Shown here in pieces: positions 55,815-57,622 of a stretch of 64,000 bases of DNA. Within the stretch, counting starts at the first letter, position 1; each line of letters opens with the position of its first letter. The stretch is taken from sequence record NC_006883.2. One strand, given 5' to 3'. Both the position numbers and the translations under genes were made by a program. Below the pieces are notes generated by a model, which made no database searches, was not told where the DNA came from, and was given only the letters and a program-made list of their open reading frames with translations.

Positions 55815-55815
55815 T
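55757..55815 (+). promoter_or_regulatory. Palindrome-type early promoter, copy 4 (inside MTase 3' end)
   Basis: TGTGCCAGTTgaggAGGTGGCACA, 29 nt, TATAAT (55810). Confidence 0.8.
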
Positions 55816-55822
55816 AGCAGTA

Positions 55823-55964
55823 TGGGAAACAAAAGAGGTTCCTAACTACCTGACAAGGTGGTGCAAGTTGTACGGTTTACCGAGAAATACACAAGCACCA
55901 ATAAGAAGCAGGACATTACCGTTGGGGTAAAAGAACACACAGTCACCTCTTTTTGTTTCTCTCA
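55823..55964 (+). ncRNA. Candidate structured RNA I (about 140 nt, 5' and 3' ends paired)
   Basis: GGAAACAAAAGAGGT pairs with ACCTCTTTTTGTTTCT; internal stems TGGTGC/GCACCA, CGG/CCG, TTACC/GGTAA; starts at the predicted TSS. Confidence 0.55.
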
Positions 55965-55991
55965 CCTTATCACTTTCTAGGCAAGGATCTA

Positions 55992-56095
55992 TGGTTGTCT
56001 CTGTTCAGCAGAGAAATTACGTCCTGTAAGTCCTTTACGAGGAGATGGATGTGCCTCTCGGTTCGCAACCGAAGAAAGAACTAACATCCCCATGG
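55992..56095 (+). ncRNA. Candidate structured RNA II / 5' leader
   Basis: Stems TCTCTG/CAGAGA, TCCTGTAA/TTAC-G-AGGA, GGATGT/ACATCC enclosing TCGGTT/AACCGA. Confidence 0.5.
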
Positions 56096-56116
56096 CTTTT
56101 TACTTTTTTATTACAA

Positions 56117-56566
56117 ATGGGAACTCGCTCACGCATAGGTCTACAACTTGAGGGACAGATCATTTCAGTATATCATCATTGGGATGGTTATCCTGAGTGG
56201 TTAGGAGTTACACTTAATAAGAAGTTTAACACAAGAGAGAAGGTTGAAGAGTTGATTGATGGAGGAGATATGTCCTCTTGTGACTCTGAGTATGGATGGG
56301 ATTACAATTATATTAATGGTGATGAAGTTAAGAGAGAAGTATCTGCACCCACATACTATTCAGAGAGAGGCGAGGACTGCCCACCAAAGATCTCTGAGTC
56401 AATCACAGAGTATCTTGACCAAACAGAGAGAACTGATGGTGAGTATGCTTACCTATTTGACAATGGTGAGTGGACTTGCTATGAGATAGGTCAGTATAAA
56501 CATGGTGGAGTGAAGGGTAAGATACTCGACATTCCAGCAGAGTTTCCAGCAAGAATGGCATTTTAG
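56117..56566 (+). CDS. Conserved phage early protein
   Basis: MGTRSRIG...SVYHHWDGYPEWLG...EYAYLF; start moved from 56045, which lies inside the RNA structure. Confidence 0.75.
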   Translation: MGTRSRIGLQLEGQIISVYHHWDGYPEWLGVTLNKKFNTREKVEELIDGGDMSSCDSEYGWDYNYINGDEVKREVSAPTYYSERGEDCPPKISESITEYLDQTERTDGEYAYLFDNGEWTCYEIGQYKHGGVKGKILDIPAEFPARMAF

Positions 56567-56626
56567 TATGCCACTTCAATAACTGGCACAAGGGTGGTTG
56601 ACCTACCACCCATAACACACTATAAT
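56567..56626 (+). promoter_or_regulatory. Palindrome-type early promoter, copy 5
   Basis: taTGCCACTTcaatAACTGGCACA, 30 nt (with hairpin GGGTGG/CCACCC and a TTGACC), TATAAT (56621). Confidence 0.8.
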
Positions 56627-56698
56627 AAGATCACTTGGCATTAAGCAATTCCTAGTCTTTTGACATAAATGGATACTCTTATGTAAGTCCAATACCCT

Positions 56699-56818
56699 AT
56701 TGAGAGATATGTGGTTCCATAGCCCCGATTAAGTTTGGGGGTTCAGGTGTAAGCGATTCCCTATGGGTAAATTTGGGCAGCATGGGTGAAACCCAGATCA
56801 TTGCCCCACTCTCTCAAT
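56699..56818 (+). ncRNA. Candidate structured RNA IIIa (multi-way junction)
   Basis: Closing stem ATTGAGAGA/TCTCTCAAT; internal TATG/CATA, GCCCCGA/TTGGGGG, GGGCA/TGCCC, TGGGT/ACCCA. Confidence 0.6.
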
Positions 56819-56825
56819 TTTTTCT

Positions 56826-56903
56826 TGTGGTATGACTTAGTACCTGTAATTAGACTCAGTAAATGGGTTAGGATCAGGTGAAGCACCTCTTGAGCATACC
56901 ACA
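56826..56903 (+). ncRNA. Candidate structured RNA IIIb (sister of IIIa)
   Basis: Closing stem TGTGGTATG/CATACCACA; AGGTG/CACCT hairpin; shares TGTAA, GAYTC, GTAAAT, GGG and GGTGAA with IIIa in the same order. Confidence 0.55.
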
Positions 56904-56932
56904 CCCCTTTGTAAACGACACTACTTTTTATT

Positions 56933-57061
56933 ATGTCACTTGATTCATCTAACGCAGTTTCTTACAACTTTGCGGAGTTCCTACTTGAGAACGCAGATAC
57001 AGCAGCAGATGTATTAGCAGTTCTTGATGATGTTGTGGAGGTGCAAGAGACCGCTTTATAA
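56933..57061 (+). CDS. Small acidic protein (42 aa; not in ORF track)
   Basis: MSLDSSNAVSYNFAEFLLENADTAADVLAVLDDVVEVQETAL; only ORF in this transcription unit. Confidence 0.55.
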   Translation: MSLDSSNAVSYNFAEFLLENADTAADVLAVLDDVVEVQETAL

Positions 57062-57105
57062 ACTGGCACACAAATGCCCCCATCTCCTGTTGGGGGCATT
57101 ATAAT
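57047..57105 (+). promoter_or_regulatory. Palindrome-type early promoter, copy 6
   Basis: gagaCCgcTTtatAAACTGGCACA, 29 nt (with hairpin AATGCCCCC/GGGGGCATT), TATAAT (57100). Confidence 0.7.
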
Positions 57106-57133
57106 AATTACATACACAACAAGGGAGATTCAA

Positions 57134-57622
57134 ATGCCTACGGTTCTTACAAGACAAGAGAGAGACAGAATCATTGGTAGTCTCCAAGATAATGTCCTTA
57201 GATGGACAGAGCAATTATGTGATTCGCTTGCTGAAAACTACAGGCAGTATCACAGAAGAATGATTGAATCTAATGCTGCAAGGTTTAATGCTGATGGAGA
57301 GAGACAAGATCTATCACGCTACGCACAACAGCAATTAGATGCCTTAAATGATGGTACATTCAAAGGAATGAGATTTACCATAGAAAGTGGTAGAAAGTAC
57401 CATAAGATCATTTCAAACGATTGGGATGACCGTAGAGAAGAGTGGAGAAGTGGTGGAGTTCACGCATTTGTCAACAAGCATACAGGTGAAGTTTACAAAG
57501 CAGCATCATGGAAATCTCCAGCAAAGCATGTTAGATACGATCTAAGACTTATTAAGGATCGTGAGTATGTGCTTGATCCACGCAACTGCGGATGGGCAGG
57601 TGGTTATCTTTACATGAGGTAA
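57134..57622 (+). CDS. Conserved phage early protein
   Basis: GRKYHKI...VHAFVNKHTGEVYKAASWKSPAKHVRYDL; start moved to the ATG after the AAGGGAG SD. Confidence 0.75.
   Translation: MPTVLTRQERDRIIGSLQDNVLRWTEQLCDSLAENYRQYHRRMIESNAARFNADGERQDLSRYAQQQLDALNDGTFKGMRFTIESGRKYHKIISNDWDDRREEWRSGGVHAFVNKHTGEVYKAASWKSPAKHVRYDLRLIKDREYVLDPRNCGWAGGYLYMR

Follow-up and report, generated by a model that had tools for sequence, protein, structure and literature searches.

Two candidate RNA families in the predicted 5′ leader of an early gene of Prochlorococcus phage P-SSM2

The DNA analysed here, called the window below, comprises bases 1–64000 of Prochlorococcus phage P-SSM2 (AY939844.2 / NC_006883.2), a T4-like cyanomyovirus (Kyanoviridae). 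Between the genes PSSM2_070 and PSSM2_071 it contains an unannotated gap of 366 nt (56567–56932), and the part of this gap from about 56633 to 56932 reads as the structured 5′ leader of a predicted early PSSM2_071 mRNA. The leader appears to be built of independent modules in series, namely a tentative module M0, a three-way junction, M1, and a bulged hairpin, M2. As judged from their relatives, M1 and M2 are two separate predicted RNA families, common in uncultured P-SSM2-like marine cyanomyoviruses and present on hundreds of contigs. The region is assigned to PSSM2_071 because both modules hold a fixed spacing of 22–35 nt before start codons in relatives. The first-pass annotation, made from this DNA alone, had described a stand-alone unit with an incidental 42-aa open reading frame (ORF), a view that does not agree with the finding of both modules 22–35 nt upstream of the start codons of many different ORFs.

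M1 is delineated by a covariance model (R1), covariation, mutual information and agreement with the minimum free energy (MFE) fold. It consists of the following parts:

56699–56818, + strand: M1, three-way junction
56699–56707 / 56810–56818, + strand: P1, 8–9 bp among copies, here a perfect 9-nt inverted repeat
56711–56713 / 56807–56809, + strand: P1b, 3 bp, beyond a 3-nt internal loop
56717–56722 / 56761–56766, + strand: P2, 5–6 bp, enclosing P3 and a 20-nt unpaired 3′ strand
56723–56726 / 56737–56740, + strand: P3, variable arm
56741–56760, + strand: invariant 3′ strand, 20 nt, unpaired, with the core AGGTGTAAGCGATTCC
56767–56774, + strand: junction of 8 nt, leading to P4
56775–56806, + strand: P4, stacking directly on P1b, with an invariant apical GGTGAAACC loop at 56785–56793

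The R1 model scores M1 at 146.5 bits, and the strongest support for the fold comes from its homologues. In 26 distinct copies, gathered without the 22-mer anchor and placed in a model-fitted alignment that favours the structure, 95.9% of the cells form pairs, with changes on both sides in 23 of the 30 pairs. When the partners are slid by 1–3 columns, only 35–55% of cells remain paired, and shuffles never reach the observed values; these controls and a plain MAFFT seed give the same pattern. Five of the six helices contain double substitutions that keep the base pair intact. In 57 well-aligned copies, the highest mutual information falls on the proposed pairs; the large M1 alignments are also model-fitted, and copies with very long P3 insertions, which are partly misaligned on their 5′ side, were left out of this count and of the strand count. 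In the latter, G.U or U.G pairs number 48 and A.C or C.A combinations only 2, which indicates that selection has acted on the fold as RNA of the gene-sense strand.

About 45 unpaired bases of M1 are nearly invariant in relatives, as judged on copies collected with a different anchor from the segment in question. In such cross-anchored sets, TAAATTTGG and GGTGAAACC are unchanged in 90–91 of 91 copies, and CAGGTG(T/C)AAGCGATTCC in 23–26 of 26. The P3 arm, on the other hand, varies widely in size, from a hairpin of 4 bp up to about 200 nt of inserted modules that recur separately. Two further features were considered for M1 and rejected. A pseudoknot or switching helix has no trace in the mutual information, whose signal is confined to the nested helices and to linkage between haplotypes of P4, and an internal similarity of the P3 and P4 strands shows no covariation.

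The second module, M2, is smaller and has a different architecture:

56826–56903, + strand: M2, bulged hairpin (model R2, 72.3 bits; covariation; MFE)
56826–56834 / 56895–56903, + strand: P1, variable closing stem, a perfect 9-nt inverted repeat
56835, + strand: bulged A
C56836–G56894, + strand: covarying pair
56837–56844, + strand: 5′ strand, TTAGTACC
about 56845–56876, + strand: variable apical hairpin
56877–56893, + strand: conserved 3′ strand, GGTGAAGCACCTCTTGA, of which about 9 nt (AAGCACCTC) are bulged

Within M2, TTAGTACC faces GGTGAAGCACCTCTTGA, ACC pairing with GGT, and TTAG may pair with TTGA. In a plain MAFFT alignment of 20 diverse copies, 91% of the cells are paired, compared with 33–44% after sliding. 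Compensatory changes affect nine of the ten P1 pairs and 11 of 15 pairs overall. The apical hairpin is swapped in relatives for a tetraloop-size hairpin or for other modules, and the M2 pattern is unique in the window. Single-sequence thermodynamics is unimpressive for the whole region (321 nt; z −0.87, not significant), for M1 (z −1.7, not significant alone, with an MFE fold that agrees with the proposed structure) and for M2 (z −3.0 on the + strand versus −0.78 on the − strand), and the case therefore rests on relatives. There, both modules carry the general marks of conserved structured RNA, namely compensatory changes above controls, to which M1 adds strand-specific G.U pairs. The earlier proposal of functional RNA folds with conserved junction or bulge nucleotides, maintained in evolution, is thus borne out by the covariation of M1 and M2.

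The same annotation had regarded the two domains as a tandem pair of related motifs. Its observations are accurate: the two perfect 9-bp stems are present as inverted repeats (56699–56707/56810–56818 and 56826–56834/56895–56903), and TGTAA (56748, 56845), GTAAAT (56767, 56859) and GGTGAA (56785, 56877) stand where it placed them. The relationship, however, is contradicted by the models. R1 matches only 56700–56817, that is M1, in the window at E ≤10, and R2 matches only 56824–56904, that is M2, in the whole genome, besides one 17-bit hit at chance level. Of the words listed for both domains, TGTAA, GACTC and GTAAAT lie in the variable apical hairpin of the second domain and are missing from its homologues; the only element truly common to M1 and M2 is a short GGTG(T)AAGC-like word. 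Similarly, the remark that stems differ while linkers match applies among homologues of each domain in other phages and fails between the first domain and the second. By these comparisons, M1 and M2 are unrelated modules and not paralogues. Nor do they form an array: each is single-copy in the 252-kb genome, in the full length of which no extra M1 or M2 was found. Tandem Repeats Finder (TRF) reports 0 tandem arrays at score ≥30 in the region, where only scattered direct repeats of 9–20 nt occur. The suggested antitoxin-mimic array of type III character is unsupported, because the tandem repeats were not found.

Comparison with known RNA families points to novelty. Rfam 15 gives 0 matches in the whole window at the gathering threshold, and cmscan of 56400–57200 returns nothing at E ≤10 and no match overlapping 56567–56932. 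The families covered include hammerhead, twister, twister-sister, pistol, hatchet and HDV-like ribozymes, riboswitch aptamers, manA, wcaG and PhotoRC. As a positive control, Rfam detects manA, a tRNA, PhotoRC-II and the glutamine riboswitch aptamer elsewhere in P-SSM2 (142837–143034, 162083–162168, 211392–211481 and 245155–245206, respectively). The RefSeq feature for the tRNA is placed at 164094–164179, which does not match the Rfam location. ARAGORN predicts 0 tRNA or tmRNA genes in the window. The first-pass annotation had called this an unrecognised RNA outside the hammerhead, twister, HDV and tRNA folds, and the results agree with it: an Rfam match and a lack of covariation were both looked for, and neither occurred. 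In the multi-module relatives L004, L017, L021 and L050, Rfam finds nothing besides a 17-bit tRNA-like piece. This piece (L004 2233–2315; Rfam tRNA 17.1 bits, below threshold) has a good T-arm and belongs to the long leader of the relative AG-345-F15.

The literature was searched as well. Cyanophage non-coding RNAs described there are CfrI, PhotoRC-II, wcaG, manA, glnA and abiF only, and M1 and M2 are not among them. The core words of both modules are absent from 200 supplementary files of Weinberg 2010, and the text of Weinberg 2017 contains no cyanophage motif. Ocean-VI, the one marine motif of Weinberg 2010 that lacks an Rfam entry, was considered as a match and rejected, its published alignment being an unrelated A/U-rich sequence stated to be absent from sequenced organisms. 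Fremin et al. 2023 (PMC10690425) presented 10,006 candidate structured RNA motifs from IMG/VR; its text describes no motif like M1 or M2, and both could already be among the 10,006. M1 and M2 thus appear new to Rfam 15 and to the literature searched, and may have been detected computationally before.

The closest parallels are other RNAs of the same phages. The manA (RF01745), wcaG (RF01761), PhotoRC-II (RF01717) and glutamine riboswitch (RF01739) RNAs are covarying leader folds of cyanomyoviruses, known mainly from metagenomes and mostly without proven function (PMC2864571). M1 and M2 resemble them as conserved covarying folds in predicted 5′ leaders of marine cyanomyoviruses, but they match none of them in sequence or structure. 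Unlike these Rfam leaders, they precede unrelated ORFans and not metabolic or photosynthesis genes; they are also predicted to start at +1, and they are interchangeable and nestable.

A comparison of the gap with 50,697 phage records gave matches only in P-SSM2 itself, in P-SSM5 and in five ‘Marine virus AG-345’ contigs derived from single cells. Homologue collections were sampled by exact-word anchors, and the M1 counts are lower bounds. The exact 22-nt strand of M1 occurs on at least 120 IMG/VR contigs (>120 among the matches listed), and an independent anchor, made of the junction and the apical loop, also gives more than 120 contigs among the matches listed, including copies with a variant strand. 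The 17-nt strand of M2 is found on 74 IMG/VR contigs, of which a few are chance matches in coding DNA, leaving about 70. A host origin was also examined, and rejected, by a 16-mer scan of 185,579 genomes, in which about 500 chance hits are expected by our own arithmetic in 596 Gb; the matches listed comprise chance hits in coding DNA and one true M1. This copy (66 bits) lies on CAZRCY010000231.1 (L229; 1896 bp), a contig binned as a Poseidoniales archaeon metagenome-assembled genome, which is probably mis-binned cyanophage DNA.

In P-SSM2, the following features surround M1 and M2:

56581–56626, + strand: PeSL-like terminator/promoter cassette (promoter scan, sequence read, word count, relatives)
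56633–56697, + strand: M0, tentative leader module, with a closing helix from about +1, ending in TGTAAGTCC (56681–56689)
56904–56932, + strand: linker from the last module to the AUG, 29 nt, unstructured, pyrimidine/A+U-rich
56933–57061, + strand: PSSM2_071, annotated coding sequence (CDS) for a 42-aa acidic protein, the gene behind the leader
57061–57110, + strand: next PeSL-like cassette (CTGGCACA at 57063–57070, 8-bp hairpin, TATAAT), bounding the transcription unit

On the upstream side, a −10 hexamer ends 4–12 nt before P1 of M1 in 50 of the 97 distinct copies with a mapped 5′ end, compared with 9% at random positions, and a −10 accompanied by a −35 element precedes P1 in 28 of the 97, versus 2.2% at random. 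Given this promoter spacing, the M1 fold would often begin at the first transcribed bases. In P-SSM2, it is the M0 helix that begins at the predicted +1. On the downstream side, the next ORF with an ATG start lies 21–35 nt past the 3′ end of M1 in 34 of 98 contexts, and a second peak is found at 61–92 nt, in many cases with one extra module interposed. For M2, the next ORF follows at 22–37 nt in 34 of the 57 non-nested contexts in which an ORF was found. The P-SSM2 linker (56904–56932), as read from its sequence, holds no Shine–Dalgarno-like purine run.

The ORFs that follow M1 or M2 are of many unrelated families; most have no Pfam match, and DUF7717 and a helicase are also represented. In every context examined, the scored ORFs and the module share one strand. 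ORFs of the PSSM2_071 family (37–42 aa, diverged yet clearly homologous) are located behind M1, M2 or other modules on many contigs. This family keeps its own linker word whether M1, M2 or a pseudoknot module precedes it. Moreover, modules nest in one another’s loops. The presence of the same ORF family behind different modules, together with the nesting, suggests that the modules are autonomous units.

Other recurrent elements accompany them. A module of about 50 nt, found about 5–60 nt after M1 in L010, L017, L018, L021, L051 and others, often between M1 and the ORF, resembles an H-type pseudoknot with two interleaved helices that covary between loci, and it has no Rfam match. A hairpin module ending in TGTAAGTC(C) (L004 2095–2150, L007 1440–1500, L008 1590–1650, and L047) occurs free-standing, within P3 of M1 or within the apical loop of M2, in the manner of a movable RNA brick.

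The earlier note had also proposed a dedicated promoter of early type, and this was confirmed. The sequence TTGACC-17-TATAAT (56598–56626) matches the consensus at 11 of 12 positions and is the best of 2.5 kb scanned. Its −35 element (TTGACC, 56598–56603) lies inside the loop of a hairpin GGGTGG/CCACCC (56592–56597 / 56606–56611), and its −10 element (TATAAT, 56621–56626) places the predicted transcription start at about 56633. The word CTGGCACA at 56583–56590 occurs 7 times in the window, with 1.3 occurrences expected, and cassettes of the same type, with CTGGCACA, a hairpin around the −35 element and TATAAT, are also present in relatives. The predicted promoter of the next cassette, 57061–57110, would drive PSSM2_072 (DUF7717).

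In T4-type phages, PeSL elements combine a hairpin with a sigma-70-type promoter, flank small ORFans in hyperplastic regions and undergo modular shuffling (PMC2839356, PMC4122927). The stretch 56581–56626 fits such a promoter/stem-loop cassette by description alone, the family having no model, and neither of these papers mentions cyanophages. The cassettes at 56581–56626 and 57061–57110 both answer to the PeSL description, and M1 is found as an indel together with such a cassette. PeSL elements, however, are short DNA and transcription signals, whereas M1 and M2 are predicted to be transcribed and form large RNA folds that begin past the promoter. A second conserved element, composed of a G-rich hairpin, AAAGTGT and TATAGTG, abuts the first helix of M1 or M2 in L165, L175, L179, L186, L201, L008 and L119; this could represent another class of promoter, or else belong to the fold itself. 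As for M0, its flanking words are common to P-SSM2 and L004, its middle is replaced in L004, and endings of the TGTAAGTCC type recur in other modules of relatives.

Taken together, M1 and M2 are probably cis-acting, interchangeable leader modules of early mRNAs. In the proposed mechanism, host RNA polymerase would transcribe the leader from the sigma-70-type promoter at 56598–56626. The first helix would start at the first bases of the transcript, burying the 5′ end and shielding it from 5′-end-dependent decay, for which a 5′ end held in a helix is an established brake. The last module would end about 22–35 nt before the AUG, leaving an unstructured, A/U-rich ribosome landing site of a kind that would suit initiation without a Shine–Dalgarno sequence. 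Unpaired strands that hardly vary, namely AGGTGTAAGCGATTCC, TAAATTTGG and the loop GGTGAAACC of M1 and the bulge AAGCACCTC of M2, would serve as a docking surface for one conserved partner, which we infer because these single strands are invariant. The favoured partner is a hypothetical phage or host protein that would set the stability or translation of many unrelated early messages. Promoter-plus-leader modules would be swapped among genes by recombination, like PeSL cassettes. The specific version, in which the modules act as a stabiliser plus a protein operator, is tentative and falls somewhat short of an even chance; for the explanation as a whole, leader identity with the proposed cis mechanism, we regard the chances of its being the best one as evenly balanced.

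Well-studied leaders offer partial precedents. In the T4 gene 32 leader, which acts as a translational operator and stabiliser, a terminal pseudoknot precedes an unstructured A/U-rich stretch; its structured element nucleates binding of the protein, which then covers the ribosome site. The P-SSM2 leader is similar in its structured 5′ element and the unstructured A/U-rich run to the AUG, but there is no homology, the binding protein is hypothetical, and T4 uses its element for one autoregulated gene whereas here many unrelated genes are concerned. Other 5′ stabilisers are the stem-loop of the E. coli ompA leader and exonuclease-resistant junction or pseudoknot folds. The P-SSM2 modules would have in common with these their compact folds, their tandem use and a helix into which the first transcribed bases are drawn. 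There is no sequence relationship, however, resistance is putative here, and known stabilisers need no long invariant single strands.

Several points weigh against the cis-acting leader with a stabilising and protein-binding role. The transcript, its ends and any processing are predictions from the DNA. A plain hairpin would suffice for 5′ protection, the docking partner is hypothetical, and for the approximately 45 invariant unpaired bases a ligand pocket or a catalytic core would be the more natural reading. The tight spacing to the AUG could reflect mere genome compaction. M0 is the weakest-supported part, its fold being no better than that of shuffles (z −0.09), and the strand asymmetry of M2 is weak (G.U 11 versus A.C 6). 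Where the downstream ORF encodes a helicase, M1 and the ORF may, by our own reading, be separated by a promoter-like sequence. In L058, M1 forms a stand-alone cassette between two promoter cassettes. Finally, the 366-nt gap shows 0 differences between P-SSM2 and P-SSM5 and other nearby non-coding DNA differs by ≥11%, but this identity is only modest evidence, because the genes adjoining the gap diverge by just 1.1–1.6%.

Other accounts of the modules were also weighed. It is possible, if rather doubtful, that M1 is the sensor or catalytic core of a new, phage-only RNA class (a riboswitch for a host metabolic signal, a new ribozyme or a nuclease-resistant fold) gating a whole set of early ORFans, with M2 and the nestable modules as a kit moved by recombination. 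A narrower proposal, which we consider unlikely, is that M1, and perhaps M2, is a phage riboswitch aptamer whose pocket for a host metabolite or signal gates early genes by cell state. Its architecture is aptamer-like, in that covarying helices meet at a multi-stem junction, unpaired bases are invariant and a peripheral arm accommodates large insertions, and M1 sits in a predicted 5′ leader. P-SSM2 already possesses a glutamine riboswitch as well as orphan manA and PhotoRC-II leaders. Even the six-T run (56819–56824) after P1 in the P-SSM2-type arrangement would fit a riboswitch, but this run is not conserved. Moreover, no expression platform is evident, P1 ending 21–35 nt before the AUG, often with other modules interposed. 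Mutual information reveals no conserved alternative pairing or switching helix, and the downstream genes have no common function.

The stand-alone M1 of L058 bears on a further explanation, according to which the modules act in trans, as free-standing RNAs or as processed products, and are merely co-transcribed with the ORF; they might be decoys or sponges for a host protein or nuclease, or an anti-defence RNA. There, PeSL-like cassettes lie on both sides of M1 (L058 9560–9845), and the M1 cassette is missing from an 89%-identical region of phage S-SSM7, which marks it as an indel. The early promoter would also suit this explanation, the invariant single strands could be recognition surfaces, and the M2 bulge CACCTC is complementary to AGGTG of M1. 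Among 103 copies of M1, however, L058 is the only one placed directly before a new promoter cassette. A cis role is favoured by the constant distance from the start codons, and no intrinsic terminator is predicted after M1 or M2. In comparison with ToxI-type antitoxins and pseudo-ToxI mimics, M1 and M2 would likewise be phage-borne structured non-coding RNA and possible decoys, but the tandem direct repeats that define ToxI arrays are absent from the locus and no toxin gene adjoins it. A trans-acting role is quite unlikely.

The chance is slimmer that M1, M2 or both represent a self-cleaving ribozyme that trims or separates the leader. Such a ribozyme would belong to a new class, because no known class matches: the Rfam models of known self-cleaving RNAs give nothing at E ≤10. 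Compact junctions, invariant cores, optional stems and clustering in non-coding phage DNA are features shared with known small ribozymes. On the other hand, P1 lies at the predicted 5′ end of the transcript, where little is left to trim, and modules are nested in loops, where cleavage would break the host module.

A put-like cis antiterminator, in which M1 as a nascent 5′ domain would bind RNA polymerase and allow it to read through the early hairpin cassettes, is highly improbable. The HK022 put RNA is such an antiterminator, situated at the start of early transcripts and made of two simple stem-loops. M1 shares with it a promoter-proximal position at the very start of predicted early transcripts, a phage origin and independence from the following gene. 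In addition, early genes here are separated by hairpin/promoter cassettes, and binding to a conserved host enzyme would explain the invariance. Unlike in HK022, however, there is no sign of overridden terminators: the cassette hairpins lack clear T tracts, downstream genes usually have their own promoter cassette, so that read-through seems unnecessary, and the tight spacing from module to AUG would be left unexplained. A feature acting at the DNA level only, such as a recombination hot spot or a mobile palindromic element, deserves almost no credence although the modules behave as mobile cassettes or indels, given the 48 to 2 excess of G.U over A.C, the pair-preserving double substitutions in five of six helices of an asymmetric multi-branch fold and the common strand of module and scored ORF in every context examined.

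Cyanomyoviruses of the P-SSM2 type rank among the most abundant Prochlorococcus viruses. To our knowledge, the function and regulation of almost all their early host-takeover genes are unknown. Two RNA families outside Rfam that covary in textbook fashion, have about 45 unpaired bases held invariant and occur in hundreds of environmental copies would constitute a post-transcriptional layer connecting early genes that are otherwise unrelated. The nestable modules would extend the idea of mobile regulatory cassettes from DNA signals to folded RNA domains, and the R1 and R2 models, with the coordinates, provide a handle for mining metatranscriptomes. If the partner proved to be a metabolite, or the activity catalytic, the module would be a new riboswitch or ribozyme class.

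The neighbourhood offers little further guidance on function. The local genes form a block of small hypothetical genes, all encoded on the + strand, and the gap itself holds only short ORFs of 31–47 aa. PSSM2_071 has no match in Pfam and PHROG searches, and the same searches on proteins neighbouring the gap or downstream of modules gave no functional hint and no toxin-like family. A perfect 8-nt complementarity exists between the leader (56661–56668) and the start-codon region of PSSM2_071 (56931–56938); long-range pairing between them was considered and set aside, with about one such pair expected by chance per 400 nt and none in L004. Other large gaps of P-SSM2 (65.7–69.2 kb) have different content, and M1 and M2 were not found in them. 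One of these, the 959-nt RefSeq annotation gap at P-SSM2 68263–69222 (L334 4263–5222), holds apparent unannotated small ORFs and hairpin/promoter cassettes of its own. Upstream of PSSM2_070, the non-coding stretch 55815–56116 is hypervariable between P-SSM2 and P-SSM5, with 40 mismatches and 75 gapped positions in 302 nt.

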